From Octopus sinensis (taxonomy: Eukaryota): 64,000 bases of DNA. Shown here one piece after another: positions 15,260-56,999 of this stretch (its first letter is position 1; each line of letters starts with the position of its first letter). The DNA lies in assembly GCF_006345805.1 (NCBI RefSeq), contig NW_021832601.1:105061-169060 (forward strand), read 5' to 3'. The translations under genes were made by a program, and so were the position numbers. The notes beneath the pieces are model-generated. The model saw only the letters and a list, made by a program, of their open reading frames with translations, did no database searches and was not told the origin of the DNA.

Positions 15260-15408
15260 TAGCTAGATTTTTTAATAATTCCATTAATAAAAAAAATTAT
15301 TGTTAAAATATTTTTATAATAATATTTCATTGAATTGAAACTGTCTAAATAGTTTGGATAATCGTAAAAGTCGTTTAATAATACACTATTATTAATATTT
15401 GAAATAAT

Positions 15409-17264
15409 ATGTTTGGCGTTGTAAATCATGGAGTATACAATGATGGCCAAAATGTGGTCGTCTACAGCGGACACTTTATGGTAAGCACATTTGTCAACTT
15501 CAATTTAAATACAACCAGTAATAGCTGATATTTTTATTTTGAGGTTTATCTTCCTTTCCCTATCATGTGCCCGACGTACCTCTTAACACTCTAATTGACT
15601 TTTTGTGGTGTAGTTATCGGTTTGTGTGTATTTTGCTTTCTATTCGAAGAGGCGTCTTGATTTCTTCAAAATGGAGAAATTTTACTGGTTATTCAATTCC
15701 AGGATGCCTTAAAATTCGACTTAATAATGCAATTTGGAGAGAATGGTGCCGACAGAGTTATATTTAAATGTTTCTTTATTTCTTTAGATTACTACAATAA
15801 AAAGCCGCTGGTATGTAAATTTAATGACAAGTTAAATGACATCCATCATGGAAAAAATGTTAATCTAAAACAATCATCTTAGAGCATTATTTTTGAGCAA
15901 AACTTTCTTAATATGAAACCAACTCTGTTTCGCAAAGAATATAACAAACTGAGAAAGTATTTCTGTGAACGAATTAACGTTCAAATTTCATGTAACGAGA
16001 GCAATCAATTCGTTAGAATATAAATTCCTTAATTATTTGATAGGACGAGCAATCACAATTGACAGAAACTAAAACACCAACTATCTACGAAGATATTAAC
16101 CTACCTCTATGTGACGAAATTGACGGGATACAGAAACCAAATTATTTTTTTCCGAGAACATCATTCGACGACACTGATTTTTTTTCAAAACAACCTCATT
16201 ATTTTGGAAATTACAAGGCTGTCGAGTCTGACACAAAATACAAAAACACGCCGCAAAGAGATTTTACTAATCTTTGGAATCATCCAAATTGTTCATCTTC
16301 AAAAATATCACAAAATCAACAAGATTTTTCGAGAAATCATTTTGTGCCAAACTATAGTTACGGGTAAATAAATTAATGCCAATTGGGCGTGCCTAACCAC
16401 ATAAATTATAAATTATAATTAACATTTAGAAATCATGTCATTGGACAACAAGAGTATAATTACCCTGGCTATCCAATGTTGTTTACTAAGGTTTCTTATT
16501 TTAGTAATTTTTAGCCATCGGTTTCTTGTTTTTCAGAGGAAGATCAACGAAAAAGGAAAAGACATATTATTCATTTAAAATCTGAAAAACACAGACGTAA
16601 TGAAATTAAAGTCTATTAATCTGAAAAGATTTTATAGAATTGGATTCATACACTTTACCTGTGTATCAAAGACTCAAAAATAAATTCAAGTACCTGCAAA
16701 CAGAGCTATGCAAATATACTACGAGAAGGTACAGTCGACTATTTATCTGTTTAGCGTCAGACTTGTTAACCTGTAACCAGAATGAAATTTTAAAAAACGA
16801 AGCAAAACTAGAAGTAATTAAATCAGAAATCGAATCAAAAACTGAAAAAACGAGGTAATGATATAAATTTAAATACAAGATATCTGCAAGAATTGATTCC
16901 CGATGAATCTATTTCAAATACTGACATTGTGAAAAGAGAATATTCTGAATATTTAAAATATATTTATGACCGTTCATTAATTAATCAAAAATATGCATTA
17001 TTTGGACTAATTATGGAGAAAATGTTCAAGTCATTCATAGGTCAGAAAATGACTAATAATTCGAAAATAAATGATATAGAATCCTGGTTAAACGATAACG
17101 TCTCCCTCCAAATGTCTAGAGAAGGTATTTAATTGTCATATTTGATAGATTCAATGCGCGTATTGCGAACATTTTCCAAAGATACCTCTATAATCAAAGA
17201 TCCCTCTTTGCTTGGCAGCGAATCTATTCAAATTGTAAAAAATCTTATTGAGAAACACAAGTGA
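15409..17264 (+). CDS. MLXIP: MondoA/ChREBP-family bHLH-ZIP transcription factor, multi-exon, copy 2
   Basis: VYSGHFMVS (MCR1), LISSKWRNFTG..KIRLNNAIWREW (MCR2/3), KEYNKLRKYF, basic region IHLKSEKHRRNEIK, WMC/DCD region KYALFGLIMEKMFKSF..SWLNDNVSL..TSIIKDPSLL. The MLXIP versus MLXIPL distinction is not resolvable. Confidence 0.88.
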
Positions 17265-17419
17265 TTCAAAATAATCATATATTCTTACTTTATTATTTTA
17301 ATCACAATGTAAATAAAAATTTATTCATTTTGAGGTTTTAGAAAAATCAAACATGTTTATTAGCCAGGATAATCAATTACATTTTTTTAAACCATAATAG
17401 TTATTTGATCTTAGAAAAA

Positions 17420-17590
17420 CGCGCTTGTGTACTTTTGCTGATCTGGAACTACTGGTTTCAAAATAATATTTAATCAGAAGGTTTCCAACCTCGACTGACA
17501 GGTCCAAATGGTTCGAGCATTAAAAGAAATCCGGACGCAACTATTGCTCTCTTCACAATTTGTTACGAATTCCTTCAAAAATGTATATAT
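17420..17590 (-). mobile_element. Highly degenerate CRE-like fragment (duplicate near 39023-39190)
   Basis: IVKRAIVASGFLLMLEPFG.. resembles VVKHALEAAGFPCQLEPPG of the 25062 element. Confidence 0.45.
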
Positions 17591-17706
17591 CACTTTTTGA
17601 TTAAAAAAATTTAGAAATTCATTAAGTGTAATAAAACATTAAATAACCATATAATTGAATAAACCAATACAACTATGCGAAAATTATTATAAGAAACAGA
17701 ACAAGA

Positions 17707-20116
17707 TCATTTATTATTTATTCCAGCTATCTTGGACTGTGTCTCAAATACCAATAACCTCCACAATTTAATCACAAAAACTTCTGCCTCGTTATCAAAA
17801 ATCTATTAAATATCTCACAAAAAAAGCACCGTCCAAATATCTTTAACCAAACTTGTCGGAGATGTCTGAGATAAAAGCTTTTCACATATAAAGTCGTTCA
17901 AACTTGGTTCTTCCTCTCCGATATACTCAATAATCTTCTTATTTACCCAACTACGAATGCGAGTATCGACAAGATTCTTGGAAAATTAAAACTTTAAAAT
18001 ACCTGATCGACCACTGTCCAGTCAATTTCGACAGAAAACAATGATTCAGAATCAGTAGGTATCTTGTCAATAATTTGCCGAATCATCCTCTTCTTCTCCT
18101 CAGCAGAAATGTATTTGAAATGATCAGTCATATCCAATTTTGGTTTCACGACTTCTGGTTTTACTTCGGGGACTTCCTCCTCCTCTTCTTCGTCCTCTTC
18201 AAACACTTGAAATGTTGAAAGGACCGGAGTTGTCTTTGCATCCGACGGAACTTCAAAGCACGTGGCAACTGGGGCCGTCGTTGTCGTTTGCGCATCTTAA
18301 ATCACAAAAAATTAAATCCACTTAGTTTTAGAGCCGTAAAACCAATTTGTTTATCTTCAATAACTTCGGAAACTTCAGTAAATTGGACAATGTCCTCTTC
18401 CTCGTTGTTAGTTAGATCAACAGTTTCGCCAGGCTCTTCGTCTTCAGTTGTAGAAATGATTTCCTCTTCCACTTCTTTGTCTGTCAAATGTTTAAAAGCT
18501 CTCTTCTCGATCTTAAAATGTAGATCATTGGGGAAAACCTGTACTAAACGTTCTTCGACATGTTTTCCTCCTCGTTCAACCACACTTCTCCTCATATCTT
18601 CCACTTCAGCTAATTCCCTTTCTCTATCTCTCTTATCCCACTCAATCTCACGATCACGTGCATGTATTAGTCTTGCCAATTGACTTCCTCTGAAAATAGT
18701 CACAATACATATCCAACTTGTAATATTTTCCGTCGTCTCGATCGTCATTGTAAGACATTAGAAAGTCATATTTATGCTTGGTATCTTTCATCTATAAACG
18801 GAATGTTATGGCTAGAATACATTCGACTTATTCCTCTCTTCTATCCGCTCAGCCTCCTTTTCAAATTCTTTCTTCTTCTTCCGTTCTCTTGATTCCCAAT
18901 TCCGCAAACACTATCAGGATTGACCGGGTAAATATATACATTAATATACGAGTTTTCCTTTTCCTGGGCTTCCCTGTCCAACCGAGTTTGTTCTTCCTCA
19001 TCCTCAAGCTCACTGTTCGTAGTAATAAAAACAAAAAACCTTGAATTCCTTGACCTTTTAGACGCAGAACTCAATCCACAGTCATTGTCCTCCTAAATGG
19101 AAATATACAACAATTGTTAACGAGATGCTTGTCCAGGGAACACACGTCCTTTGCTTCCCTTGCGTCCTAGTAGTTTACAGTAGTTTGTCTACCTTTCTCA
19201 TATTTTTAATAGCGATTGGATCTCCTGCAAGTACACCAGCATATTCTACGAGGAGTGCGTCAAACTCTGCCTTCACGGCAGCCATTTCTGCATTCATTGG
19301 AGGCTTCGACTCAACTTTGGGAATGGGGACTCCGGGCATTTTGTGCCTCATGTAATCTTCCAAATGATTCCGACTTTTAGAATTCACTTTGACCTTAAAT
19401 GAGTATATCTAGACTACCAAAAGGGGTTTCCCCGCAATGACATATCCATTAAGAAGTCTGAGAGAACAAAGAGTAGACTCCGGGTGCTTGTAGTCACAAA
19501 ATGCAAAAGCTATTCAAAAATTTAGCACTAAACTCAATTACCTTGTAATTTACCAGCACTGGTATAAGTTCTCTTCCAATTAAGCACATTCCCACATTTC
19601 TAAAAATAAGATGAGTCAGCCAACCTCGGCCAATTGCCTAATAAGAGTATCTGGACAACATTCTGGAATGTTCCCAATAAAGACAGTAGTTGTAGTATAC
19701 GGAATTTCCTTGAATATGAAATAATGAAAACTACCTTTGGAACGGCGTACTGCATTGGTTGAGACATGACAACGCCGAAATTAGGAGAAGGAGTCATAAT
19801 TGGAGTTTGAACAACTGAAGGCTGAACTGGAGTAGGTATAAACGGTACTTGCATTGGCTACAATATAAACAATAGATCCCAACGTTTACTGGGGCAGGGA
19901 CTCCGTAGGGAAGGAAACCTAACAAATTGTTAGCCAACATTAGAAATTATAATCTATAAGTTATCTAAATATGAAAATCTAATGAAACCTGAAGATTAAA
20001 AGCTAAAATTCTACAAATTTATAATTCCTGATAGTTTATAATTATTATTAAGAATTACCGGTATTGTATGAAGATGTCATTTGAGGTACACACGGAATAC
20101 GATTAGGAAACGACAT
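17707..20116 (-). CDS. RBM25: RNA-binding protein 25 (Pro-rich N-terminus, RE-rich region, PWI domain), copy 2
   Basis: Starts MSFP. C-terminal EEKKRMIRQIIDKIPT..LFSVEIDW..IRSWVNKKIIEYIGEEEPSLNDFICEK..EAEVFVIKLWRLLVFET is the RBM25 PWI domain. Confidence 0.92.
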
Positions 20117-20504
20117 AACAATCACAAGAACAATACACAACACGATATTAATTTAAATTAATATTACTTTACAAAATTAATAATTTATTTATATTTTACT
20201 TATACGTATGATAGTAGTATAATAAAATTTTTAGTTACATTTTTGGAATCAAATATTTTTTTTAATAAATTAACAAGCACGTCGCAAATCCAGAGGCCCA
20301 TAGATGTCAGCCACACAAAAATTCAAAAGCAAGAAAGAGAACAAGCAAGCTAATCATTTTAATCAATTCTGAATTGAGACGTGAATAAGTGTGCAGCTGG
20401 TGAAAAATTTAAATTAAAATAAAATTAAAATTAATTCAATTTGATTTAATTTAAATGTTCTAAATTTATATGTTTTAAATTTAAATATACAAAATAAAAT
20501 TCAG

Positions 20505-20839
20505 ATGGTTAAAATCGAATTATATGGGTTGGTCATTATGTAAATATTTCATTAATTAGATCAGAAGAATGCGGAATTTTATTAGAGTTACAGGGTCAAG
20601 TCAAATTTGAGGATAAATGTAATTGTTATTTTTTTCTAGACAAAAATGTAAGTAATTTTTCTTCACTTTTAAAGGGTGTTCCTTACCTTGTAATGGGTCG
20701 TAAAATTTTAGTTGGACAAGCCAGTGAAGACGATATTAACATGGCTTTAATTTCTTGTGATTCCGGAAAAACACATTTTGTCGTAAAAAAGAAATTTATA
20801 TTCAAGGATAAACCAATACAAATACTAAAAAATAAGTGA
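20505..20839 (+). CDS. CHTF8: Chromosome transmission fidelity factor 8, 3 exons, copy 2
   Basis: Spliced product MVKIELYGSEECGILLELQGQV..GVPYLVMGRKILVG..KKKFIFKDKPIQI matches Ctf8 (LMELQG..GIPVLIVGHHILYG..KILFKTRP). Confidence 0.75.
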
Positions 20840-21049
20840 TCTATTAAATTTTGCTCTATTTTGTATTTTTTTTGGTGTAAAATTTCGTAGAAATAGTTTA
20901 TGTACCTAGGATGTTTTCATTGAGGATCGTGTGATATTAACGGATCAATGATTTAGAAAAATTTTAAACATTATTATGCTTTTCCTACTATTAGGGACAT
21001 TCTTATTCATTAGACTGTTTGTGATTCGGCGTGAATATGTGACCTAGTT

Positions 21050-21502
21050 ACGCCCCTGGGCTGTCCTTCTGTTTAGTAAATTGCACATCTGCCGAAAATA
21101 TGGGATAAAGCAGTCTAGGAAGTTAAAGATCCACTGCTTCAGTAGACTGTCTCTAATAAGATGGTCGAAATACGGGTGGACACGACGATAAAGACGGATA
21201 CTAAAGTCAATAATAATAAACCGGACATTTTTGTCTAAGACATCATTATGCTGATCAAAGTTGGGATTACTTCTCAACAATCTTTGAAGCATGTGGAAGT
21301 TGAGAAATTACATAAATACGACCTTTTGGGAAGCGAATTGAGGTTAATTCACAATGCAAATGTGAATTTCGTACCGTTGGTTCTCACATGGGATGGAATA
21401 ACATCCAAATTTTACAAGCAATACCAAAACTCTCTACAAGTCCATGACTCAACGCGTGCACATGTTCAGACAATCGTGATCAAAAAAACACTGGAGAGCA
21501 TG
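21050..21502 (+). mobile_element. Decayed RLE-endonuclease non-LTR retrotransposon fragment (same family as 50180-50963), copy 2
   Basis: HICRKYGIK..VEIRVDTTIKTD..NKPDIFV*..GITSQ..VEVEKLHKYDLLGSEL..VPLVLTWDG..KKTLESM. Joins the hisS remnant immediately after ESM. Confidence 0.85.
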
Positions 21503-22276
21503 CGCCCTGAGTACAAACTCTTACCTACAACGGCAAAACATGCAATCTGTTCGGATAGTCTTCCAGGGCTTTCGAGTGATGTTCTTATTTCCGGACGACA
21601 AACATCGATTATCAACAGGTATTAGAATATGACTACATCAAACCAGGTCGTTTTATATATCTTTAAAGAGCAAGCACTCCTCCTCGAAACTCCTACCATT
21701 CTCGACGAATTCTATGATGAGAGCCGCACACATTTTTATGGCCTTTGCCACCTCTTGAAGAAACAAAACATCCCCTTTAAGATCGAATCCAAACTCTTTC
21801 GCGGTCTTGACTGTTACAAACAAACCGTTTTGAAATCAGATCTGATGTTCTTGGTGCACAAAATACCATTGGTGCGGGAGGACGTTACAATGGGATTACA
21901 GTTATGCTCGGCGGCCCAGATTTTCCTAGTATTGAATATTCCACTGGTATCGAACTAATCTTACAAACAATAAATAGGCAAAATGCATTCCTTTTCGTCT
22001 GTCTCATTCCTTTTATAAAAAAAAGTTAAATCTGTATGTATTAAAGCACTGTATGAACTCCGACATGGAAAAAAACAGCTCAACTTACCTCTGCAAAAAA
22101 TATAAAAAGTCCCTCAAGCTGCTAGTGATCTGGGAACTACTTTTTCTCTCATCCTTGTAGATGAAGAGCATTCAAAAAGACTTGTCCAAGTTAAAAATAT
22201 GAAAACTCGAGACTCAATTGAAATTCAATTAGAAGAGCTCACTTCTGTCCTCTTAAAAAATAGGAATAACAAATGA
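21503..22276 (+). pseudogene. hisS: Bacterial (chlamydial-type) histidyl-tRNA synthetase, 3' two-thirds, copy 2
   Basis: ETPTILDEF..IPFKIESKLFRGLDCYK..TVFE..DVLGAQNTIGAGGRYNG..LGGPDFPSI..TGIE.ILQTI..VQVKNMKTRDS..KNRNNK* matches bacterial HisRS (LVRGLDYY, GGGRYDGL, anticodon domain VKNM). Frameshifted. Confidence 0.92.
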
Positions 22277-22317
22277 CCTTTGACTATAGAAGAACCACCT
22301 CTCTCACGTACTTAATA
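22273..22317 (+). pseudogene. aspS: aspS start codon and first codons, copy 2 (left of the Tc1 insertion)
   Basis: ATG ACC TTT GAC TAT AGA AGA ACC (MTFDYRRT-H) fits the AspRS N-terminal YRTH motif. ATG 22273-75 overlaps the hisS TGA at 22274-76. Confidence 0.8.
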
Positions 22318-22485
22318 CAGCGATACAAATAAAAAACGGAACACTCATTTTCTCGATTTTTTTTATTAAATGACTAGCTCGGCAGCTCGCTTCGCTCACC
22401 GCGACCTAGCTCCTGCGGAGGGCCTGTTTCATCAAACAACTATAAGTTTATGTATATGTATAAAACTACCTGGTTTAATGTAACC

Positions 22486-22917
22486 CTATTCTATCGCCTG
22501 TTGATAAACGATGTTTGTCGTCCGTCCTTCCGTGGCATATATGAATAAATTTTCTCTTCTGCCTACCCTCGAGCATCCCACATACAGCTGTCCATGTGAA
22601 AAGCACTCACTCTCTAAAAATAACCCAACTACCTTTAATGACTGTCCCTGGGCCTTGTTTATTGTCATTGCAAAACTCATCCTCAAAGGAAATTGCAGCC
22701 TTTTAAATCTAAATGGTAATTCATCAGAAATTATCGGAATTCGTGGAATATAAACATCCTCACCTCTATACTTACCTGTTAATATCGTCGCCTCTATTAC
22801 GTTAGGCATCAAATTTTTGAGAACTAACCCCGTTCCGTTGCATAATTTAGGTGGCGCAAGATTTCGTAATAAAACCACTGGAACGCCTATCTTTAACTTT
22901 AAAAGATGATTCGGCAT
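22486..22917 (-). pseudogene. Helitron PIF1-like helicase C-terminal remnant
   Basis: [62 protein letters not shown]. Confidence 0.92.
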
Positions 22918-23274
22918 TCCAGAGGGATCTAAGGAGTTTAAAAATTCAATCCGGTTGAATTTTTAGAAAATAACAAAAAAATAAAGAAAAACAAATAAAA
23001 ATAAATAATTTAAAAACAAAAAAATAAAAAAAACTTTAAAAATTTGTAAAATAGTATAAACAAAAAAAATCTCTGCCGCCACGGCAACAACCAGTCTAAT
23101 TTTTTAACAGCCAATTAAGATAATGTTTAAGAGCCTTTATAGTACGGAGATTTAGCTTAGTGACCTTGATTAGACAAACCACTGGCGGAAATGGGGCAGC
23201 CGGAGATGCGGCAGGCAGAGTAGCAGCAGCCAAAAAAGCGACACACAAAAAAGATTTAATTAATTACCTTAAGC

Positions 23275-24833
23275 CAGAGGTTTCCAAATGGGGAGGCGCG
23301 CCTCCCTAGGGAGGCGTTGACTCGTGTCAAGGGAGGCGCGAAAAGTATTTCAGAAACATTTTTTAGAAAATTATATCTATGTAAAAAACGTGACTATATT
23401 CCGATAATAAGAGTTATTAATTTAAAAATTATATTTTTTCAAAAATTTATTTAATTTATTAGACAATTAAATAATTTTAACACATGAATAAATTCTTGAG
23501 TGGTTGCAAAAGAAAATTCACGAATAATAAAGATTTTGACGATGGTTCAAAAAATCAAAATGATTGGAATATAATCAATACCACTCCAAAGACAAGAAAA
23601 TACTTTCCATCTTACTTATTGTTAGGATTCACACGTATCTTTGTTGATTCTATGGAAAAACCCCTCTGTTTGCTTTGCCTCAAAACACTTGCAGCAGATA
23701 GTATGAGGCCATGCAAATTAAGAAGACATTTTGAAACGATGCATTCTGAACATGTCCATAAGTCTGAAGAATTTTTTAAAAGAAAATTAGAAGAGTTTGA
23801 TAACCAAACGAAATCGTTAAAAAAACTTGTTTCTGTCTCTTCAAATGCTTTACTAGCATCGTACAAAGTTTCTTACAGGATTGCAAAATGCAAGAAACCG
23901 CACAATATCGGAGAAACTCTAGTTTTGCCAGCAGCTATCGATATGGTTGAAGCAATGTTTGGCGAATCCTATGCAAAACAATTACAGCAAATACCGCTTG
24001 CTGATAACACAGTCGCTAGAAGAATTGATGACATATCTGAAGATCTTTGTGATCAGTTGGTTTCTCGACTACGTAACTGTAAATTTGCTATACAAGTTGA
24101 TGAGGGAGCTGACATAAATAAAAATGCACATTTAATTGCATATGTCAGATATGCTGAAGAAAGTACAATAATAGAAGATCTATTATTCTGCAAACCATTT
24201 CCTGGAAGGAGCACGGCCAATGAAATTTTTAATATAATTGATACTTTTTTTGAAGAAAATAACATAGAATGGATCAATTGTGTTGGACTTTGTACAGACG
24301 GAGCACAGTCAATGTCAGGAAATAAATCTGGTCTTCAAGCTCTTGTAAAAAACAGAGCACCAGAAATTATCCGGACGCACTGCATGCTGCACAGATCAGC
24401 ACTTGTCTCAAAGAATATGAGTCCAGAACTGAACGATATTTTTGCGCAAATTACAAAAGTTATAAACTACATAAAACACAGTCGAAATTTGAACGGAATA
24501 TGAAATTTTGTCGAATAAAGCAATGAAAGTTTTGTTGCCATTTGCTACTTCATATTTATGCGAAACTGGATTTTCTGCACTAGCTGCAATTAAATCTAAA
24601 TATCGAACTCGTTTAGTAGTGACTAATGAGCTAAGAGTAGCACTCTCTGCGATGACACCAAGATTTGAAAAACTTTGCGCCAAGATGGAAAAAAAATTAT
24701 CTCATTAACTTTTTGTTTTAAAAAATTGTTTTTGATAAAATAATAATTGTATTATATTATGGAATATAAAGGGAGGCGCAAGATTGTACTTTTTCTCTAA
24801 GGGAGGCGCGTAAAAAAAGCTTGGAAACCTCTG
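23275..24833 (+). mobile_element. hAT (Buster/ZBED5-like) element, internally deleted transposase, nested in the Helitron
   Basis: TIRs CAGAGGTTTCCAA / TTGGAAACCTCTG, TSD CCTTAAGC at 23267-74 and 24834-41. ORF 23484-24503 has a BED finger, DE catalytic motif, CTDGA and HCMLHR. C-terminal FATSYLCETGFS..KYRTRL. Confidence 0.95.
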
Positions 24834-25061
24834 CCTTAAGCTGACCGTTTTTTCTTCAGCTTCGTTTTTCCTCCTTCGGTTATCTATTTAAAAAATTATT
24901 TTTCAATAATAAAAAAGTTTAGGAAAAGAGGCATACCGAAAATAAATTCTATCTTTACGAAAAACTTAACTAAATAGTTAATATTTTTACGCAAATTCTT
25001 CTGATTGCGCTGTCAATTGGTGGTAAATTGTGTTAATGATTGTGCTAATGTGGTTTTAACT

Positions 25062-26522
25062 AACAATATAATCCCCGCACTTTTTTCCCTTGGCCTGTCT
25101 ATAAACCCTTCGAAATCTGAGATTTTTAACATCTCTTATGATCCCAATTATTTTAACACATCTATCTATCCATTATTTAATTCGCTTCTCCCTAATATCA
25201 AGGCTGTTACATCCTCTGATCTTATTGTCCTTGGCTCCCCAATCTTTTCCTCGGCTATCCCTTCCTTCCTGGAGCTTAAGCTCACAAAAATACAAGAATC
25301 TATAGCCACACTTAAAACAGTCGACGCACATGCTGCCTTCTTCCTGATCAAAAATTTCCTTGCTTTCCCCCGGTTACAATTTTTCTTACAGTCCGCCCCT
25401 TGTCACCGCCATCATTGTGCTCTTCAGCACTTCGATCTTTTGCTAAGAAACTCAATTTCGGCTAATACTAATGTCAATTTTGATGATGCCGGGTGGCAAC
25501 AAGCGATCCTGCCAGTCCGTCACGGCGGACTAGGTCTGCAAGCTCCTTCTGTTTTGGCTCTCCCTTTCTACCTTTCTTCGTCATACCGCTGTAGTCCGCT
25601 TGTCCTTAGGATTCTTTCTCCCCATTCCGAATCCGTTCTGGACCAAGAGCTTTCTCATGGTATCGAAGTTTGGTCTTCCCGTGGCTTCGACATTCCTTGC
25701 TATCCCTGCTATACAAAGGCGTGGACGGAAACAATGTTTCTTCAGTTATACAATTCGCTATTATCCTCCTGTGATCAACACCGGCGCGCTTGTCTTTTGG
25801 CCGCATCCTCCGAATGGAGTGGCGCTTGGCTCAACGCATACCCTTCCGGAAATACGGGAACCCTGCTGGACCCAAAAAGTGTGCAGATTGGCATTTCTCT
25901 TAGACTTGGTCTGGACATCTGCTTTCCACACACTTGCCGCTGTGGTTCTGTCGTAGATCGGAAAGGTCTCCATCCACTTTCCTGTCGCAAAAGCCCTGGC
26001 CGGATTCCCAGGCATTCTGAATTAAATTCCGTAGTAAAACATGCACTTGAAGCAGCCGGATTTCCCTGTCAGCTGGAGCCTCCTGGCCTTCTAAGGGAGG
26101 ATGGTAAGAGACCTGACGGGGTCTCACTCTTTCCCTACAAGAACGGGAAAGCAATCGTCTGGGATGCGACATGCTCTGATACTTTCGCATCATCATGTCT
26201 TTCCTTGTCGGCGGTCGAGGCTGGCTCAGCAGCCAAGAGGGCGGAGACGAAGAAGGCATCTAAGTACGCCTCCCTGATGGACCGTTTCATCTTCGAACCG
26301 GTGTCAGTGGAAACTTCCGGTGTACTTGGCCCGTCTACTCTCCGTTTCCTCTCGAAGATCGGAAGGTCATTGGGAAGGCGAGGAACGACCCCCGTGAACT
26401 GATGTGGCTTTTTGAGCGCATCTCTCTCGCAGTTCTAAGGGGGAACTGTTCCTCGATCCTCCTCTCGGCTGCGGTTCCGCCTCTTAATTAGTGATTTCTT
26501 TACCTTATAAACTGTCATTTAA

Positions 26523-26558
<36 letters not shown>
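25062..26558 (+). mobile_element. 5'-truncated CRE-like RLE non-LTR retrotransposon with poly(A) tail, nested in the Helitron
   Basis: Open RT C-terminus (LGSPI, GGLGL), C-x-C..H..C knuckle, RHSELN, KRPDG..WDATC, 34-nt poly(A) at 26525-26558, short AACT duplication. Empty site visible in the 11095-11400 repeats. Confidence 0.92.
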
Positions 26559-26560
<2 letters not shown>

Positions 26561-26859
26561 ATCAAAGTGTTTTTCAAAATCTGTTAATTGCACACTCTAT
26601 TCAAGGTCGTGCAATCTGTAATTGCACATTCTGTCAAAGTCAAATATGATAATAGCTTTAATTTTGATTCATGGTCGATAATGATATATGCATTTAATTT
26701 TAAAGAGAAAATCATAGGATGAATTGAATTTCTTTATCGCGAATAATTGGGAGTTCATCATTGTTAATATTCTCGCTGTCGTTTTCATCAAGGATATTCT
26801 TAATACGTTAGATTTTTGCCTCGAAGGTTTTAATGGACCTCATTATGAATGTCGAGGAC

Positions 26860-27298
26860 ATTAACGTTGTTCATTTTAATCAAATGCAGAAAATAATTTT
26901 TTGATTTTTTGGCGGGAAGGTTTTAAGGACCTGATCATGTAAGTCGAGGACATCGTAGTTGTTCATTTTAACCAAAATGCAGAAAATTTTTTTTTAATTT
27001 TTTTTGGGGGGGAAGGTTTTAAGGACTTCATCATGTAAGTCGAGGACATTGTAGTTGTTCATTTTAACCAAAATGCAGAAAATTTTTTTTTAATTTTTTT
27101 TGGGGGGGAAGGTTTTAAGGACTTCATCATGTAAGTCGAGGACATTATAGTTGTTCATTTTAACCAAAATGCAGAAAATTTTTTTTTAATTTTTTTTGGG
27201 GGGGAAGGTTTTAAGTACCTCATCATGTAAGTCGAGGACATCGTATTGCCAATTTGAAGTTGGTGTGCACACACAGACAGACAGACAGACAGACAGAC
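26860..27298. repeat. About 98-bp tandem repeat array plus (CAGA)n microsatellite near the Helitron 5' end
   Basis: Repeated CATCATGTAAGTCGAGGACAT..GTTCATTTTAACCAAAATGCAGAAAA..GGGGGGAAGGTTTTAAG; CAGA repeats near 27273-27298. Confidence 0.88.
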
Positions 27299-27529
27299 AC
27301 ACACCATACCATTTTATTATTAAGATTGATTTATTTTAACAAAAATAGAATTTTTAGAAGACAAACATAACTTTAGCCTTTAAAAAAATAAAAACAACTT
27401 ATATTTCGGACCGTAGTTAAATCCAGTTTTGTCCAAACAAAATAAAAAAGAGAACAAAATAAAATTCTCTATTTTTACAGAGTTTTTTAAACCACTTTTT
27501 ATTTTATTACACGTGTTGATTCTTGTTAC

Positions 27530-28215
27530 ATGGTTTTACAACTTACATTACAAGAAAAAGCAGAAATTATTACGTATTATAAAGTCGGAAAGTCATATCG
27601 GGAAATAAGAAATTTGACCGGAAGATCTCTGAGTGCCATCTCGAGAGTCATTCGAAACTTCACCATGAATGATTCCTTCCAGAGAAAAAAAGGCTCAGGA
27701 CGAAGATTTAAACTTAACTCTGATGATCTCGGAATAATTCAACGTGAACAAAAGTTTGGAAAAGGGAACGTAATGGTTTGGGGCGCATTTACATCGAAAT
27801 GTTTTTCGGAACTTGTTTGGATAAAGGGAATTATGAATGGGAACTTATATGTAAGTATCTTGGCGGACTATTTGTTGCCTTTTTTGGAGAAAACCGGAAT
27901 CCGGTCTCCAATTTATCAGCAAGATAATGATCCAAAGCACACATGCAAGGTGGCTAAAGATTTTTTTGATGAACACCGAATTGAGTTATTACAATGGCTT
28001 CCTCAAAGTCCCGATTTGAATCCAATCGAGCACGTGTGGGCCTTCATGAAACATAAAATAAAAGGGACTGAATTTAAAAAAAAGAGTGACCTATTTGAGG
28101 AATTAAAAAATATTTGGAATGATCTTTCAATAGAATATGCGACATCCCTTGTTGAACAATGCGGAACAGAATTTTAGACGCAATTAATGCTCAGGGGGGT
28201 CATACTAAATTTTGA
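27530..28215 (+). pseudogene. Tc1 transposase, internally deleted
   Basis: HTH (GKSYREI..SRVI), VMVWGAF, YQQDNDPKHT, WLPQSPDLNPIEHVW (DD34E type), GGHTKF end after a frameshift. The first catalytic D region is deleted. Confidence 0.92.
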
Positions 28216-28412
28216 ACTACCATTGTTCTCTTTTTTATTTTGTTTGAAAAAAATTTGGTTTAAATACATATTAAAATCTTTGACGTTTGGATTTTTATAA
28301 AAGGCAAAAGTTAAGATTATAGCTTGAAATTCGATTTTTTATTAAAATAAATCAATCATTCAATAGAAAAAAATCGAGAAAATGAGTGTTCCGTTTTTTA
28401 TTTGTATCGCTG

Positions 28413-28889
28413 TAAATTCAATGTTGGATAGTCTGTTACTATTTCAGGTTGGATTCACTGCCGACGCGATCACGGTGGACTGTCTTTATTGACCCCCAAT
28501 CATCTCAAATTTTCACGTTGCTGATAATGCTATAATGCAAGGATCGCTAATTTCAAATCGCTCCTTGTTTTTGCAATAAAGATCTTCTTTCCGATCGTCA
28601 GCACGAGTTTATTCTGCTTGATTTAGAAATGAGTTTTTCAACTCCGAAACACTTTAAAAAATCATTCATTATTGCCTAAAAGTTTTTTTCAAAAAGTGCC
28701 TCGATGTTAAGGTGCCGGACACCATTTAAGAAATGACTCAAGCCGACTGTAGTGATATTATAAAATAGATCGTCCAATTGTCTCTTTTCCGCCTTGATGA
28801 AATTGCTAAAAAATGCAAGTTTCCTGTTTTTAAAGTGGAAGGAGACGGGATTGTTAAATGTATTTTTATCAAAGGTAGTGTATTTAAAG
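28413..28889 (+). pseudogene. aspS: aspS segment between the Tc1 and the hAT, copy 2
   Basis: VTISGWIHCRRDHGGLSFID, then a deletion to [32 protein letters not shown] (motif 2), then RLDEIAKKCKFPVF..IVKCIFIKG. Confidence 0.9.
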
Positions 28890-31122
28890 CAGGGGTCGGC
28901 AGGATTTTTGTCTTCGCGGGCCAAAATTTTATTTTTGTATGCGATCCGGGCCAAACGAGAAAAAATCCTTATCGGTCACAAAAATAAAGCAACGCTTGCA
29001 CATTGCGATCTTTCTTTATCAAGTTTTTTTTGCAACTTTCTTACGAAATAAAAATTTATCAGTTAAAAATGATTATAAAGAAGTGAATTTATTTTACTCA
29101 TTAATCTGACTAGTTGCTAAACGTAATATATCGTTAAGATGTGAATCGGTAATCCTCGTTCTCAGACAATTTTTTACATTATTCATTTTAGAGAATAACT
29201 GTTCACATAAAAATGTGCTTCCAAATATACAAGCCATTTTCATAGCATTGTCGGTTAATTGCGGATATTTTCTGACACATACAAAATTTTTGTAGAAGCT
29301 CAAAATATCCATTTCAGAAAAATATTTTGATTTAAGTGTACTGTCGCATTGAATTTCAAGTAATTCCATTTGATAACACCCTGGTACTGTCTCAGTTTCA
29401 ACATCAAATGGGATTGAAAAAATGTTGAAAAGATTTGTATGAGCCTAAAAAATTATATATGCGCATTTTACTCTTAAATCCATAAAACGTGATGAAAATT
29501 CTGATCTCAATTCCATAACTATGTTTGCATATTCTGGAACATCAGTCGGATTCGTAGAAAGAAAATTCACAAAATGCGTCATGTTTCCTTTTTGTAACTG
29601 TAATTCCCACAACTTCAATTTATTTTCAAAAGCAGTAATTTCGGCATACATTTGGTGTATAAATTTATTACTTCCCTGCAGTTTCAAATTTAAGTCATTT
29701 AGATGTGAAGTTATGTCTACAAAAAATGCCAATTTGGAAATATTATCAGTATTTCGGAAATATGAAGCATCATAATTCTTTTCTTCAAGAAAAATTATAA
29801 CATCTTCCCGTATATGAAAAAACCTTTTGAGCATTGATCCTCTACTAAGCCATCTGACATTACAAAAATATAAAAGATCCCCATATTCTGCTTCAGTGTC
29901 GATTAAAAATTGCCTGAAATGCCGATGATTCAAGCCGCGGGATAAAATAAAATTTACTGCATTAACAACAGCATCCATTGTCTCACGTAACCTGACTGAT
30001 TTGGCAACTAACGCCTCTTGATGAACAATACAGTGAATCTTAACCAAATTGTGCTCAATTCCAAATTTTTCCATTTCATTTTGGAGTAATGTAATAGTTC
30101 CCTTTTTGTTCCCAACCATAGATGGAGCCCCGTCTGTTGTAACTCCAACTAATTTTGAAAGTGGAAGATTTAATTCTGTTAAAAGTTGCATTAAATGCAA
30201 GAAAACGTCGGTTCCTGTCACTGTACCCATAATTGGAATAACTTTGACAAATTCTTCAAAAATTTGGTATGCTTCAGTTATCCCTCGAACAAATATGACA
30301 AGTTGAGAAATATCTCTTCTGTCAGTACTAGTATCCAATGCGATAGAAAAATATTTGAAATTCCCAAAAATGTTTTTTAAAGAGTTATTTAAATCGAATG
30401 ACATTTCTTCTACTCTTCTTGTTACCGTTCTTGGAGATAAACAGATAGATTCAAAAATGTTTCTTTTTGTAGGAAATAGATTTTCAGCTACTGCCATTAA
30501 GCATTGTTTTATAAATTCTCCGTCTGAAAATGGTTTCATTCGTTTCGCAATTATCTTTGAAATTTCGTAACTTGTACGTGGATATCATCTTTTTCACAAC
30601 TCAAATTATTAAAAAATGTTGTTTGCTTTTGGTAATTTTGTTCGAGTCTCTTAATTTCCTTTAAGCGAGATTCTCCTGTAAACTTGCTGAATTTTTCGTA
30701 ATGTCGAGTTTCATAATGTCGCTTGATGTTATAAAGTTTTTTGACAGCAACTTTTTCGAAACATATTAAGCATATACGTTTTCCATAATCCTCAATAAAG
30801 AAATATTCATGAGTCCAATCTGGATTAAACGTACGGGTTTGAAGATCTTTAGTTCTTTTCGAACAATTCGGAATTCAAATTCACCACACAAAATTATTAA
30901 CACGTTTATAAATTTATTTAATTTTTAATAATAGATAAAATGTATGTATAAATCTATATTACTAAAAGTCTAGTACTTTACTAAATTTGCCCGCGGGCCA
31001 TGTTAGTTGGAAAAATTTGTCGGCAGGCCAATTTCCCTTAGTATTATAAAATTTGTTCGCGGGCCATTTTTAAATCTTCCGGGTCCTAATTTGGCCCGCG
31101 GGCCGCGATTTGCCGACCCCTG
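28890..31122 (-). mobile_element. hAT (SPIN/GTF2IRD2-like) element inserted in aspS
   Basis: TIRs CAGGGGTCGGCA / TGCCGACCCCTG, TSD ATTTAAAG at 28882-89 and 31123-30, single ATTTAAAG in copy 3 near 44325. Transposase KPFSDGEFIKQC..ALDTSTD..TTDGAPSM..HCIVHQEAL..VRWLSRG..FGSTFLCEQLFS, frameshifted. Confidence 0.95.
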
Positions 31123-31816
31123 ATTTAAAGGTATTAACCGCTATAACTTTTTTGTCGGAAAGTTTTGTCTTGAAGGAGACGAGCAAATGGTCTGCAATCC
31201 AGCACAATAACTATTAAAAGACATTGAAACTTGTATGAATTCTGAAAGAGACCTTCTCATTTTTGCAGCGGTAGATGAAGCCACAGTCAACCAGGGAATG
31301 GAGCAACTCCGTCGCCTTGTTGCTCTGGAATGCAGCCTCATTGACTCCAATCGCTTTGAGTTTTTTTGGGTCGTTGACTTCTCTTTCTTCGAATGGAATG
31401 CAGATGAAAACAGTCTTACAAGCGTACACCATCCTTTCACAATCCCCAATCCCAATGATTTCAAACTTCTCGAATCCAGCCCTCTAAAAATACAATTACA
31501 AGCCTATCACATCATTATTAGTGGGTGGAAGATTTCAAAGAATTTCAGATTCTCTACCTCATTAAAAAATCTTTAAAGCACTTAAAATCAGTGAAGGGAT
31601 CTAAAAAGAATGTTTAGTGTTTTTCTCAAAGCCCTTCAATATGGGACACTCTGCATCCTTGAGTCGCAATCAGCTTCGATAGACTCATCATGATTCTGAC
31701 TAAAACAGCAAAAATATTCGTGATATCATCGTTTTCCCAAAAACGCAATTAATGATTCAGTGCTTTTCCTCTGTTATTCCTGGGAAGCTCCATGAGCTCG
31801 AGCTAGAAACTGAGCC
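31123..31816 (+). pseudogene. aspS: aspS 3' segment, copy 2
   Basis: GINRYNFFVGKF..FAAVDEATVNQGMEQLRRLVA..EFFWVVDF..HHPFT... The VNQ-x-x-x-LRR-x-x-A stretch matches chlamydial AspRS ANQSLDHLRRLIA as recalled. Confidence 0.9.
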
Positions 31817-31890
31817 CAAAAAATTACTCGGATATAAATCGAGGATATTAAAGTTTAATTTTCAAGAGGATTTGATTAAGAGAAATCAAA

Positions 31891-32376
31891 AGTATTTAAC
31901 AAACTTACAAGTCACTTTCGAGTTTTATTTGTTAGGTCTTTTACACTTAGTTATGCTACTGTAACCCAATGAAGAGAGGCTCCGCAGCCCAACAAGAGCC
32001 AAAGAAAGAGCAAGAAATCGATATTAATAAAGTCTCTAAAGCTTTCGGTCATTTAATTGGTAATAACCTCGAAACTTTGGGATTTGAGTTAGATATCCAA
32101 AAAGTGATTTAAAGAATGAAAGACTTCCTCTGGAAGACTCTCCGAGTGTGTTCAAGCCACCTCAATTGTTCAGGAAGAAGCTTTTCAAAACCCCGCGAGC
32201 AAAAACCTAACTCAAGCAAATGAATTACTTTCTACTAATGTTAGTCAAAAAGGAGTTATCAAACTTGAGAAACACAAACTCAATACCGCATTGAAAACGA
32301 GGAAAAGGCCTGCAAAATACAAAGTTCCAAGCGATGCAACTCTGCAATAGATTTTCCAAAGTGGTTAGGATAGCAG
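31891..32376 (+). pseudogene. mip: mip 5' remnant, copy 2
   Basis: Near-identical to 505-990 (offset 31386). Confidence 0.78.
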
Positions 32377-32385
32377 TTTTTTTCT

Positions 32386-33182
32386 TTATAAAAACACCTG
32401 AAATTTTAGTCTAATCTAAGAAGTCAAAGCAACAGTTGGAGCTTGTACTAACGAGTCTTCTGATAAGTTGATGTTAAAAAGATTAAGATAGCCGATTTTA
32501 GTCATAGATAGTGTCTCCATACTATTTAACGATAAGATGGTAACATAGGCTTGGCAATTTTTTTATTACAAAATTAAAAGAGACCACCTGATAAACAACC
32601 TGATTACGAAGTCGACAACATAGGAAGTACTTTCTTCCTGTATTGAGAAAGTGACTTCTGCTAGTTGCAATGATCTTTAACAGGAGGAATCTGAAAAGTA
32701 AAAACACTTAAGTATCCTTCAATCGAACGATCTTGGCGAAAATGAATTCTAGAAGAACTCCTTTATGTGCTGAAGTAGGAAGATAAGAGAGCTTTGCCAT
32801 CTGAATTGCGAATTGCTGTATGTTGCTAAGGTTCTTTTCTGTGACAATTAATAAAGACAAGGGGGAGTAAAACGAGTAGCCATTTTATTTGTGTGAAGAA
32901 GAATTTCCGTGCTTTACTGTATTATTTCCTGATACAAAAAGCCCAATAATTACGGCAGATGCAGTTCCAATCATAACAGCAGCGGCTGTCTTAATATAGG
33001 CATAGCCATCTTTAACTAAAATAGCTTGAAGAATGCGAATTTTGCCCCCTTATATTTTTAGTATCGATTCGGAGAAAGTGAGAATTTTTACTTTCGATCT
33101 GAATGATCGATATAGGTTTTTTCATCGCATGGGATTTTTTTAATTGAGGGGCTAATCACAGAGGTAAAGATTTTACGTTCGG
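32386..33182 (-). pseudogene. Bacterial-like ORF remnants, partial copy 2
   Basis: Duplicate of about 1000-1797; breaks off at 33182. Confidence 0.5.
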
Positions 33183-33430
33183 TTACCTACCCCACATCTA
33201 CAAGAAGAAAAACTAGGCCACAGCAACCTTTTGTTCCCTAAGGAATCTGCACTTGGATCCGAAGGCCTTACACTAGAGAAAGAGACACAGGAATACATTC
33301 AGTCCTACCTGAAATGAACCCGGGTCAGAGGACTATATATACAAAGCAATAAAGAATTTAATTTCCCTCAATTGCTTCCAGGACGTATCTTAGAAGAGAT
33401 CGGCCGTCATCAACAACTATTTTGCAATTT
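33183..33430 (+). mobile_element. Possible Helitron Rep/helicase-linker remnant at the copy 2/copy 3 junction
   Basis: Frameshifted GLPTP..QEYIQSY-PEMNPGQRTIY.AI resembles the stretch just upstream of the Helitron helicase Walker A (LN.EQR.IY). Confidence 0.4.
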
Positions 33431-33529
33431 TATCGTCTAGTTAATCATCTCAACGTTTTCGCTGCTTTATTATTAGCACTTTCTAAGAACCAAAAGTAAT
33501 TTATTTAATTGATTTTGTTTATGCGTGCC

Positions 33530-33760
33530 ACAGAACGAGTTATTCACTTCTAAACAGAAATAGTTTTCCATTGCTATGTTGACAGGTGGCATCTGGCTTA
33601 TTTGAAGGAGTGACCAAGTAGATGCCATCTTGATTCAATGATACCCAGGCTCAATGGTCTTGCATTACATATTTTGTATAGATTTTTGTTTGACATTTTA
33701 TTTGGCCAGTTAATGCCAAGCAACAGTCAGAGCTTTTCTACAGTAAACCAAAACTGACTT
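33530..33760 (-). mobile_element. Degenerate LINE (RTE-like) RT C-terminal remnant
   Basis: LYKICNARPLSLGIIESRWHLLGH..PVNIAMENYF resembles the RW.LFGH..PA..AM..YF tail of RTE-type ORFs. Confidence 0.55.
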
Positions 33761-34254
33761 AATAGTGTTTTTTAACATTGTTCTAGATTTTTGTAGATAT
33801 ATAAAAAAATAAGATTCATCATCGATCGAATGTAGAAGAGAGGACGGTATCTCACTGGTCCTAAACGACTCGGCCAAAGGCCGGAGGGGTAAGCTTTATT
33901 CGTGAATATGTTTTTCAATTGTCTTATTTCCGCAAGTTCTCTAATTAAGACTCTCAGCTCTCGTATTTTTCTAATTGATCTATCTTTTTTAGACCAAATT
34001 GAACAGGAGTAAACACAAATATCTAATCTAACTTATAAAAATAAACTTGTTTAGCATACAATTCAAATTTTAAAAAGTTCAAAGAAGTTTCCTAAAATTG
34101 ATTATGATATTTTCTGACAGCTATTTTCTAGTTTTTGTAGATATCGATTGTCTTAAGAATATGCACGAGAATCAAGAATTTCCTTGAATAATAAACATAT
34201 GCAAAAATGATGCGGAAAAATCTTAAAATTCATCTAAAATCCATTCATCTAATT

Positions 34255-34758
34255 CAGCGTTTCCCAACCTTTTTGTGCTCGCGGTATCTAAAACTAGGTT
34301 TTTTTTCTCCCGGCACTTAAAAAATCAATATCCATTAGAAATGTTTTTTTAATTAATATATTCAAGCAACTTAACAAAAAATTACCAAAAGTAATTATAA
34401 TAACTGAGACACTTGTGCTTATTTATATGCACACAAAATTTCCAGACGGGAACGAATTTGCGACAAACATACGCGGAGGTCATCTTCAACTGATAACAAT
34501 ATTCTCAGATATGTCTTGTAGACGGCGACTGATAGTATTGTTCGATAATGGAATCTTATTAATCTGTTTGGTTGCTTCCTCCTCAAGAATTTTACTAACA
34601 ATAATTTTGCAGGCGGGTAATATCAATTTTTCTCCAATAGTGTGATTCTTACGGTTTAAAATATTATTATACAACTATAAATAATTTTCAATTTTAAATA
34701 TTAAAGATCTTGCGGCACCTAAAACCAGACCTCGCGGCACCCCGGTTGAGAATCGCTG
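34255..34758 (-). mobile_element. Non-autonomous hAT, copy 3 of 12661-13159
   Basis: Same TIRs and ATCTAATT TSD, so it predates the duplication. Confidence 0.9.
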
Positions 34759-35432
34759 ATCTAATTAGTCAGCTACAAAATTGCTATAGTCTATTCGAGA
34801 ACGATTTTATTTCTGAAATTACATATACTTGATTATTGACGGCCAATATTAAAATCTGTGAATCAGATTTGTGAAAAGCCTTTTTATTATCATTTCACCC
34901 CATGATAACTAATAGACTGAGTGATCACTACAAAAAAAACATTCACAACTAAGTAATCACAGACTTGTATGAGATGATTCGTGTCTTGCGGGAGCGACGG
35001 TTCAGTACTGCCCTTATCATAGGGAATCGTAAGGTTCGTCTGTTTGACTGTTTTGAAGTATTCAGAGAAAATTTTCAATAAAGGCTTACAATAGAGTTAG
35101 ATCTCTGACGAATTTTTTCTGCTTGTCAATATTCAGATCATCTATGGTGGTTGATTAAAAGCAATAGTAGTGAGAAACCTTTTCCGTGCATTCAAATGAA
35201 TCTTATCAAAATTTTATTCATAGACAAGTCTATAGACGTTTCTATGGAGTTTTTGATTTCAAATGTTATTTCCTTGGGCCTAAATTTTTAAATCATTTAA
35301 CTTTTTGTGGTTGTGCATGTCTAGGCATTTAGCACCGCATAAAAATATAATTTTATATTATGAATTGTTTAGTTTATACAATTGAAATATAATAATTAAA
35401 AACATAATTGAGTAATTAATATCTATCTAGGT

Positions 35433-35971
35433 ATGCCTGTAATATTTTCTGTCATGATTGTTAATAAATACGGATCTCTACTCTATTTTTACGAAAAACC
35501 ACAAAAAAACGTACTTGACAACATATCTAACGATAAGAGAATTCAAAAAGAAAAAATTCAGGTTTAAACAACATTTATACAAAACAGAATCATGCAATAA
35601 CAGCGGAGTCTAATGGTCAGATTTCGCAGGCTAAAAATATGAAACTCTCTGACAACGAAAGAATAATAATGGCGAGTACAATGCATTCACTTTTCCACAT
35701 AAGTTGTCAATTGGCTGGTGAAAACGTGGGAAACGGAATACAAGTCATTGAGTCTCCAAATGTTCGAGTTCACTGCTACCAAACTACTACGAGTCTTAAA
35801 TTTGTAGTCGTATCTCAGCCAATAACGTTTCGTATACAACAGCTCATGACCAAGTTGTACATGATCTACGTTGATTTTGCCTTAAAGGACCCTTTTTATA
35901 TTCTTGACATGCCTATTACGTCTCAACTCTTTGAGTCTGCTGTCCACGCTGCACTGGATTTTTATTCATAA
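35433..35971 (+). CDS. TRAPPC4: TRAPPC4, copy 3
   Basis: Near-identical to 13831-14369. Confidence 0.9.
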
Positions 35972-36452
35972 TGAATTTGTAAAGAAATTAACTTTTTAAT
36001 TGTTTCAAGATGTAAACTGATCTTTATGTTCTCCATATATTTATAATTTCAAATAAATAACTTTCATTTTGATAAGTTCTACACATTAGTATTTACGCAT
36101 TTTAGGGTACTTTTTAGATTATAAAACAATGATTATTGCAACTAAAACTATATTCAATAGGAGATGTATTGCTTTTATTGTCATCGTCTCTATAGTTGAT
36201 CTTTTTACTGCCCTACATTGTTTTTCTGAAAATGTTTTAAATGAATACAGTTCAGATTAATACATATTCCGTGATATATATCTTTCTCAAGGTTGAACTT
36301 AAAAAAGTTTGTTTTGTTGCTAAAAAAACTTAACAAATAAAACTCGAAATTATCAGTTTATGAACAACTCTTGTAATTTACGTTTAAATTTGACGTGATA
36401 TTAATTTTTTAGATTTTTAATTAAAGAGTTAAAATTTGTAATAGTTAAAATA

Positions 36453-36862: not shown

Positions 36863-37011
36863 TAGCTAGATTTTTTAATAATTCCATTAATAAAAAAAAT
36901 TATTGTTAAAATATTTTTATAATAATATTTCATTGAATTGAAACTGTCTAAATAGTTTGGATAACCGTAAAAGTCGTTTAATAATACACTATTATTAATA
37001 TTTGAAATAAT

Positions 37012-56996: not shown

Positions 56997-56999
56997 TAA

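Follow-up and report, generated by a model that had tools for sequence, protein, structure and literature searches.

Nuclear insertions of the Wolbachia type are the closest described counterparts of the locus analyzed here: in insect and nematode chromosomes, non-functional stretches of the chromosome of an obligate intracellular bacterium are found with their gene order kept, pseudogenised, and with host repeats both around and within them, and host transposons lying inside the bacterial DNA are what classically proves integration. What is claimed as bacterial DNA in an animal genome is often contamination. The Chlamydiota, too, are obligate intracellular bacteria, and to our knowledge few transfers from this group into animal germlines are known. 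We analyzed a 64-kb stretch of Octopus sinensis contig NW_021832601.1 (hereafter the window; it contains no N, and coordinates count from its position 1) in which a decayed bacterial aspartyl-tRNA synthetase gene, aspS, is split by two transposons, a Tc1-type element and an hAT element, and in which a sister copy of the same remnant has both sites empty. Like the Wolbachia-type insertions, it is a dead, collinear piece of bacterial chromosome flanked and interrupted by repeats.

Our reading, which we hold to be very probably correct, is that chlamydia-like DNA integrated in an octopus chromosome, decayed, was copied, and was then struck by host transposons. The proof of integration sits in the sequence itself: host transposons with target duplications, matching empty sites, and common lesions. 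A literature search found no report of chlamydial DNA transfer into a cephalopod genome; a survey of O. bimaculoides describes 12 functional transfers, none of which involves a tRNA synthetase or a chlamydial donor (PMC6011040).

Identity and decay of the bacterial remnant

The conceptual translation of the aspS remnant has one standout relative, P0001, with 41% identity over 93% of the query; an exact look-up of P0001 found no contig. A full-length cluster mate of this protein, P0121, is encoded on a 38.8-kb metagenome contig, L001, which is Simkania-like and chlamydial, and on which hisS, aspS and an FKBP_N/FKBP_C (mip-type) gene follow one another in this order on one strand. By genome, P0121 is nearest to a Simkania metagenome-assembled genome (73%), to other Chlamydiae, to Waddliaceae and to Chlamydia. 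When the L001 proteins were compared with the window by tblastn, residues 221–426 of histidyl-tRNA synthetase (HisRS), 1–38 and 200–592 of aspartyl-tRNA synthetase (AspRS) and 35–137 of Mip were recovered, and the order and strand of hisS, aspS and mip are as on L001 in every copy, as far as each copy reaches. The remnant is distributed over three copies, laid out as follows (ORF, open reading frame):

1–985 (+): copy 1, clipped by the window edge, comprising the 3′ end of aspS (1–443) and mip (577–985); identical to 31387–32371
21592–21662 (copy 2) and 43149–43218 (copy 3) (+): Helitron-like fragment, terminal part of an ORF for a Pif1-type helicase, immediately left of the bacterial DNA
21663–22272 (+): hisS remnant, copy 2, about codons 221–432, with in-frame stops (tblastn to L001 HisRS residues 221–425)
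22273–22317 (+): aspS remnant, copy 2, first 15 codons (MTFDYRRT...)
28413–28889 (+): aspS remnant, copy 2, middle piece, codons ~16–38 then 200–~335; 97.7% identical to 43858–44333
31123–31829 (+): aspS remnant, copy 2, 3′ piece, codons ~341–592, with stops and frameshifts (Pfam tRNA-synt_2)
31963–32371 (+): mip remnant, copy 2, N-terminal domain of an FKBP-type isomerase, about codons 35–160 (tblastn/tblastx to L001 mip)
43219–43813 (+): hisS remnant, copy 3 (Pfam tRNA-synt_His)
43814–44650 (+): aspS remnant, copy 3, start codon mutated to ATT, both insertion sites empty

The fullest copy keeps ~3 kb of bacterial sequence, the extension of the mip remnant to 'QYRIE' having been read off the reading frames.

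Among 62 fetched bacterial loci, the best matches of the hisS, aspS and mip remnants are all Simkania-like, and homology to mip after aspS was found in chlamydial or Planctomycetes–Verrucomicrobia–Chlamydiae (PVC) loci only. A tblastx comparison of the window with these loci returned hisS, aspS and mip and nothing else but three short isolated matches, each to a single locus, which we judged spurious. In a neighbour-joining AspRS tree (31 sequences, 100 bootstraps, no eukaryotic AspRS among them), the remnant lay inside the chlamydial set in 100/100 bootstraps and was sister to the Simkania-like pair in 99/100. The stop codon of hisS and the start codon of aspS overlap in copy 2 as ATGA (22273–22276), which is a feature of bacterial operons; copy 3 has ATTA. 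A pseudogene of a host mitochondrial-type AspRS was also considered and rejected, since the gene stands between hisS and mip in the arrangement seen in chlamydiae and the tree places it among chlamydial sequences. As judged from homology, gene order and phylogeny, the split sequence was shown to be bacterial and chlamydial.

The remnant had decayed before it was copied. Indeed, in both copies 2 and 3, aspS codons 1/18–38 are directly joined to codons 200–255 (the junction lies at ~28483–28493 in copy 2), codons 39–199 (161 codons) being lost; this is the common deletion that a first, sequence-only reading of the window had noticed between 'FID' and 'QSSQIF'. The same two copies have in common at least six in-frame stops in aspS (NVG-stop-SV, IML-stop-CKDR-stop-FQ, DTI-stop-EM, IIK-stop-IV, AQ-stop-LL) and four in hisS (VSN-stop-SYKQ-stop-IG, L-stop-KK, KI-stop-K). 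It is because the deletion and the stops are common to both that decay can be placed before copying. Other lesions are private: a 17-bp deletion is confined to copy 2, and copy 3 has lost its start codon and has an aspS that ends at codon ~453, where the sequence passes into that corresponding to position 1354 of copy 1.

On its left side, the bacterial DNA has a sharp edge, with hisS codon ~220 directly after the Helitron-like helicase-ORF fragment listed above. This fragment (21592–21662 / 43149–43218) is 84% identical to 12064–12131 of element X, another member of the same family described below, and the fusion point is internal, near the 3′ end of the family member. The right edge follows mip codon ~160, at about position 985 in copy 1 and about 32371 in copy 2; on this side we found no matching rest of the Helitron-like element and no Helitron 3′ end after mip. 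The stretch 43137–43220 was tried as further hisS sequence and rejected, since its match is to the end of the helicase ORF of the Helitron-like family. Directly upstream of the Helitron-like fragment stands an ORF without a Pfam match (42839–43118 and 21239–21516), which presumably represents something akin to the C-terminal part of a retroelement ORF, and a 43-bp indel between the copies (21517–21559) falls exactly where the ORF at 21239–21516 meets the fragment.

The two insertions and their empty sites

In copy 2, the aspS remnant is broken by two insertions, the first of which holds further elements:

22318–28412 (+): insertion 1, 6,095 bp, starting with CAGCGATACAAATAAAAAACGG and ending with its exact reverse complement
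22375–27312 (−): nested block, Helitron-like, ~4.9 kb, in the left repeat of the Tc1-type element; boundaries approximate
23275–24833 (+): second hAT, nested, with ends CAGAGGTTTCCAA/TTGGAAACCTCTG (tblastn to hAT protein P0124)
25067–26558 (+): 5′-truncated retroelement fragment with an A run of ~35 bases at its end; left edge approximate
27530–28177 (+): Tc1 transposase remnant, 215 amino acids (aa) (Pfam DDE_3 and HTH_38)
28890–31122 (−): insertion 2, hAT, 2,233 bp, near full-length but frame-shifted, with 12-bp inverted ends CAGGGGTCGGCA

Both insertions are bordered by a target-site duplication that is present as a single copy in the sister remnant. The TA of insertion 1 is found at 22316–22317 and 28413–28414, and copy 3 has a single TA at 43858–43859; likewise, ATTTAAAG flanks insertion 2 at 28882–28889 and 31123–31130, and one ATTTAAAG is present in copy 3 at 44326–44333. 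The empty sites of copy 3 contain no extra bases and no excision footprint. Excision of the elements from copy 3, as opposed to sites that were never filled, was rejected on this ground. After both elements and one copy of each duplication had been taken out, copy 2 was collinear with copy 3 from end to end, with 1,477 matches, 35 mismatches (2.3% of 1,512 aligned bases) and 8 gap openings, the largest of 43, 17 and 16 bp. Each element's terminal repeat was found in the window solely as its own pair, the chance expectation being 0.00 and 0.02 matches. The part of copy 1 covered by the window starts 265 bp to the right of the position that corresponds to the hAT site, so that both of its insertion sites lie outside. 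The sequence-only reading had described a Tc1 with a TA duplication and an hAT with an 8-bp duplication splitting copy 2 aspS, a single TA and a single ATTTAAAG in copy 3, and two remnants that should align once the elements are removed: the first two claims were confirmed to the base, and the third was borne out. Because the empty-site sister copy has the post-transfer lesions in common with copy 2, the insertions came after the transfer.

Insertion 1 had been taken for a Tc1 element. Its ends and its TA duplication are indeed those of Tc1, and its transposase remnant is closest to Tc1-type proteins, but it is not a plain element: a Tc1 of about 1.2 kb holds ~4.9 kb of nested sequence. The inverted ends match perfectly for 46 bp (48 bp with the flanking TA) and, when the nested block is set aside, run inward imperfectly to ~190 bp; an inner inverted repeat (27324–27457 / 28223–28357) has 73–74% identity. 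The Tc1 proper amounts to ~1.16 kb (22318–22374 plus ~27313–28412) and is internally deleted. Aligned with the 338-aa protein P0242, the transposase remnant has lost ~85–95 residues (roughly 62–76 to 158), the missing part including the first catalytic D and the Tc3-type helix-turn-helix (HTH), and one HTH is kept. Between the surviving D132 and E167 lie 34 residues, which is the Tc1 spacing between the second D and the E.

The block nested in the left Tc1 repeat contains a Pif1 2B remnant at 22486–22917 (Pfam) and a terminus reading ...GCCGAGCTAG, followed across the boundary by T, at 22375. It has three collinear pieces in common with element X (10707–12204), a collinearity that is broken by the retroelement fragment nested in it. 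The second hAT, which lies within the Helitron-like element, is bordered by an 8-bp duplication of its own, CCTTAAGC, at 23267–23274 and 24834–24841. Just upstream of the A run of the retroelement fragment, a 465-aa ORF (25005–26402) without a Pfam match shows Cys/His and 'RPD' motifs, which we take to resemble those in the C-terminal endonuclease part of certain site-specific non-long-terminal-repeat retrotransposons. On both sides of the block as a whole stands an imperfect direct repeat of ~12–14 bp, TTTTATTAAATGA / TTTTATTATTAAGA, at 22362–22374 and 27313–27326; this repeat is Tc1 inverted-repeat sequence, and it is at odds with insertion of a Helitron, since these elements duplicate no target sequence. 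A 96-bp tandem array of ~4.5 copies (26813–27248) stands at one end of the Helitron-like element and is adjoined by an (ACAG)n microsatellite (27245–27300).

Insertion 2 encodes a GTF2IRD2/FAM200/ZBED5-like transposase. Its coding capacity covers residues 2–583 of the 600-aa relative P0124, with frameshifts, and the hAT dimerisation domain (PF05699, Dimer_Tnp_hAT) is found on ORF 29094–29369; P0124 itself carries the domains zf-C2H2_12, DUF4371 and Dimer_Tnp_hAT, and relatives also carry the FAM200-ZBED5 RNase-like domain. The element's 364-aa ORF has 96–98% identity with three proteins of Octopus sinensis, all annotated as 'GTF2IRD2-like'. At the DNA level, the family is present with 97–99% identity at octopus loci L063, L064 and L065 (GCA_006345805.1): the L063 copy (2,273 bp) has its own 8-bp duplication, AACTAAAC, and the L064 and L065 copies adjoin an ECSIT gene. 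On the strength of these matches, the family of insertion 2 was shown to be of octopus origin. Both ATTTAAAG and AACTAAAC have TA at positions 4–5 of the duplication, the pattern of the Buster family. In a literature search, the terminal sequence of insertion 2 gave one irrelevant match, and the CAGGGGTCGGCA ends were matched to no named family. SPIN, the element to which insertion 2 had first been likened, is a Buster-type hAT (PMC12637253).

The sequence-only reading had also expected both families to recur elsewhere in the host. This holds for the hAT; for the Tc1, a different Tc1-like element is present in L064/L065, and no second copy of the exact family was found in the window or in the 38 kb of octopus loci searched. 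L064 and L065 (VCDQ01013315.1, ~35 kb apart) constitute a local duplication of a block made up of the ECSIT gene, the hAT and the Tc1-like element; since this block is duplicated, segmental duplications with embedded transposons recur in the octopus genome.

Repeat units and rival explanations

The window is AT-rich (33% GC) with few long ORFs. Comparison of the window with itself showed that a unit of ~22 kb is present as three partial tandem copies, units 1 to 3, each of which holds one of the bacterial copies:

1–1796 vs 31387–33182: repeat match, 99.4% (self-comparison)
1354–10706 vs 44653–54735: repeat match, 98.5–99.6%, three aligned blocks (segment B)
12205–21520 vs 33799–43120: repeat match, 99.55% (segment C)
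21562–22317, 28413–28889 and 31123–31430 vs 43119–43859, 43858–44333 and 44326–44650: repeat matches over the bacterial part
10707–12204 (+): element X, 1.5 kb, member of the Helitron-like family, at the junction of segments B and C

The stretch 43119–44650 is unbroken in copy 3, and its equivalent in copy 2 is broken by the two insertions. Divergence between units is mosaic. Units 1 and 2 are identical over the bacterial tail (0/985 differences, 1–985 vs 31387–32371) and differ by 0.28% in segment C; units 1 and 3 differ by 0.6–0.9% over most of segment B and by 2.7% at 1354–1796; and units 2 and 3 differ by 2.5% at 32740–33182 / 44653–45095 and by 2.3% in the bacterial part. Such a pattern suggests that the units arose through several steps of duplication or gene conversion, or that the assembler set haplotypes in tandem.

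Two eukaryote-only sequences are found within or at the end of the repeated region:

14037–14369: Sybindin/TRAPPC ORF, on the same N-free sequence as the remnant
54588–54926: exon of a gamma-tubulin complex component (GCP; GCP_C_terminal), intact, in unit 3 alone

An asparagine synthase piece (Asn_synthase ORF) lies on the same sequence. The remnant therefore appears to be physically linked to host genes and repeats on one molecule, linkage and junctions being those of the assembly only. The GCP exon crosses the end of the repeated segment at 54735, and because it continues past this position, unit 3 is the native right end of the array.

Several other features of the units and of their flank were recorded. 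Element X has an 84% identical piece in octopus locus L063 (9221–9463) and contains a 103-bp tandem repeat (11094–11399). In unit 2, a unique 616-bp filler (33183–33798) stands where ~10.4 kb (segment B plus element X) would be; nothing similar to it was found in the rest of the window or in the octopus loci. Consecutive Arg/Glu-rich ORFs without Pfam matches at 39597–41457 (−), the same as at 18000–19860, may represent pieces of a splicing-factor-type host gene or of a retrocopy. The unique right flank (54736–64000) contains a pogo-type DDE_1 remnant (56142–56426) and at least two further hAT remnants, at 59844–60722 (−) and 62582–62857 (−).

These observations are best explained by the following history. 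A chromosome fragment of ~3 kb from a bacterium related to the Simkaniaceae, comprising the 3′ half of hisS, the whole of aspS and the 5′ part of mip, would have entered octopus nuclear germline DNA and joined existing repeat sequence, its left edge coming to lie against a fragment of a Helitron-like element. It would never have been functional in the host, and it decayed, losing codons 39–199 and gaining many stops and frameshifts. The surrounding region of ~22 kb, host genes included, would then have been copied to give at least three tandem copies. After the lineages of copies 2 and 3 had split, the Tc1-type element inserted into a TA at aspS codon ~15 of copy 2, and the hAT into ATTTAAAG of the same copy, in the region matching the GAD-domain insertion of aspS; the ~4.9 kb of nested Helitron-like, hAT and retroelement material may have arrived later or been brought in with the Tc1. 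In this scheme, we infer the germline route, the order of the nested insertions, and the status of the copies as paralogues rather than alleles. Entry, decay, duplication and host elements, in this order, had already been proposed by the sequence-only reading; the common lesions and the empty sites support the order, while the duplication may be complex or partly an assembly effect.

The status of the copies is where the most serious alternative comes in. Copies 2 and 3, and perhaps copy 1, could be two haplotypes of one locus that were assembled in tandem, with the insertions as polymorphisms; integration of the bacterial DNA would be unaffected, but a history of duplication followed by insertion would no longer hold. 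The mosaic divergence between units is what such an arrangement could give, copy 3 differing from copies 1 and 2 by 2.5–2.7% at 1354–1796 and by 0.6–0.9% farther along segment B, as are the large insertions and deletions that set the units apart. We nevertheless consider it improbable, given that there are at least three copies of the remnant and not two, that the units meet at specific junctions (element X at 10707–12204; the 616-bp filler at 33183–33798) without gaps or N runs, and that the intact GCP exon is reached from unit 3 only. Integration stands whether the copies are paralogues or alleles.

It could also be argued that a Helitron-like element captured the bacterial fragment, and that the fragment was multiplied by transposition of this element rather than by segmental duplication. 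Suggestive in this respect are the left edge, which is fused to a family member internally and close to its 3′ end, and the presence of another family member at the unit junction 10707–12204. Such a course of events is nonetheless quite unlikely: ~9 kb of non-element sequence upstream and 1–9 kb downstream, including pieces of host genes, were copied together with the remnant, the bacterial DNA is not followed by a Helitron 3′ end after mip, and the identification of the family as Helitron is itself based on the Pif1 remnant and the CTAG terminus only.

Contamination, or a chimeric assembly join, has the general prior on its side, bacterial sequence in animal assemblies being usually contamination. 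For this locus it is very unlikely indeed, as the sequence-only reading had argued. No living bacterium could be the source of an essential gene that has lost 161 codons and contains more than 10 stops; the gene contains two animal transposons with target-site duplications, one of them holding further nested animal elements; the three copies are diverged and set within repeated host sequence; and the remnant has a GC content of 36–38%, compared with 45% in the nearest bacterial contig.

Finally, the idea that both inserted elements were bacterial insertion sequences (IS), for instance of the IS630 family, already present in the donor chlamydial genome can practically be dismissed: although IS630 too duplicates TA and matches Pfam DDE_3, plasmid-borne bacterial IS630 transposases match the Tc1 remnant only weakly, at 26–27% identity (E ~1e-4; range 5e-5 to 4e-4), against 47–50% (E 1e-44) for 338-aa Tc1/Tcb1-type proteins, which carry the Tc3-type HTH, the hAT family occurs at 97–99% identity in unrelated octopus loci, and the sister copy having the same post-transfer lesions has empty sites.

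Four points weigh against the history that we favor, that is, integration followed by decay, duplication and transposon insertion. First, the nearest relative of the donor is just 41–47% identical in protein and the branch is long, and no closer relative was found in the metagenomes of the Joint Genome Institute (JGI), scanned with 8-residue peptides of the aspS remnant; because the nearest relative is this distant, the donor lineage would be an unsampled one. Second, divergence between units is uneven (0 to 2.7%), unlike what one simple duplication predicts. Third, the exact Tc1 family has no second copy in the window, in the 38 kb of octopus loci L063–L065 or in the JGI metagenomes, which is a weak negative: the metagenome scan used the terminal 27-mer of the Tc1 (0 matches), and the octopus search covered just 38 kb. 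Fourth, exact look-ups of the hAT, Tc1 and aspS ORFs of the window found no other contig.

Comparison with known systems

The gene cluster, the two transposons and the insertion as a whole each have a known counterpart. In the chlamydial hisS–aspS–mip cluster, the three genes have the order and strand that they have here, as on the Simkania-like contigs L001 and L002. The octopus version differs in that hisS is without its 5′ half, aspS without codons 39–199 and mip without its FKBP_C domain, and in that all three remnants are full of stops. Because the remnant is dead, it plays no physiological role. It can serve as a dated fossil of an old association between octopus and chlamydiae and as a neutral marker to date local duplications and transposon activity; it is also a warning that decontamination pipelines would remove real host sequence.

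Insertion 1 resembles the Tc1 family in its TA duplication, in its long inverted ends starting from CAG and in the one HTH and the DDE_3 domain that it keeps, its nearest named relatives being of the Tcb1 type. It departs from the family in being internally deleted, in having lost the first catalytic D and in the 4.9 kb nested in its left repeat, and no protein found shares more than 50% identity with its transposase. Insertion 2 resembles the Buster-type hAT elements: it has an 8-bp duplication, short inverted ends starting from CAG and a C-terminal dimerisation domain, and its relatives carry DUF4371 and the FAM200-ZBED5 RNase-like domain. Unlike the named hAT elements, it has as its nearest named proteins the 'GTF2IRD2-like' proteins of octopus, and its link with SPIN is by general Buster features only.

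A bolder proposition is that the locus is the first documented chlamydial (Simkania-like) germline transfer to a cephalopod, that it records a past germline infection by an unsampled lineage, and that Helitron-like elements could have helped to capture or amplify the fragment. We put this forward tentatively, as a possibility that we would not bet on.

Set beside the Wolbachia-type insertions, the octopus locus adds a new, well-proven case to a phenomenon already known, with an unusual pairing of donor and recipient. The donor is a Simkania-like member of the Chlamydiota, not Wolbachia or Rickettsia, and its DNA came into a cephalopod; at ~3 kb the piece is small, and it has been amplified together with its host flanks.

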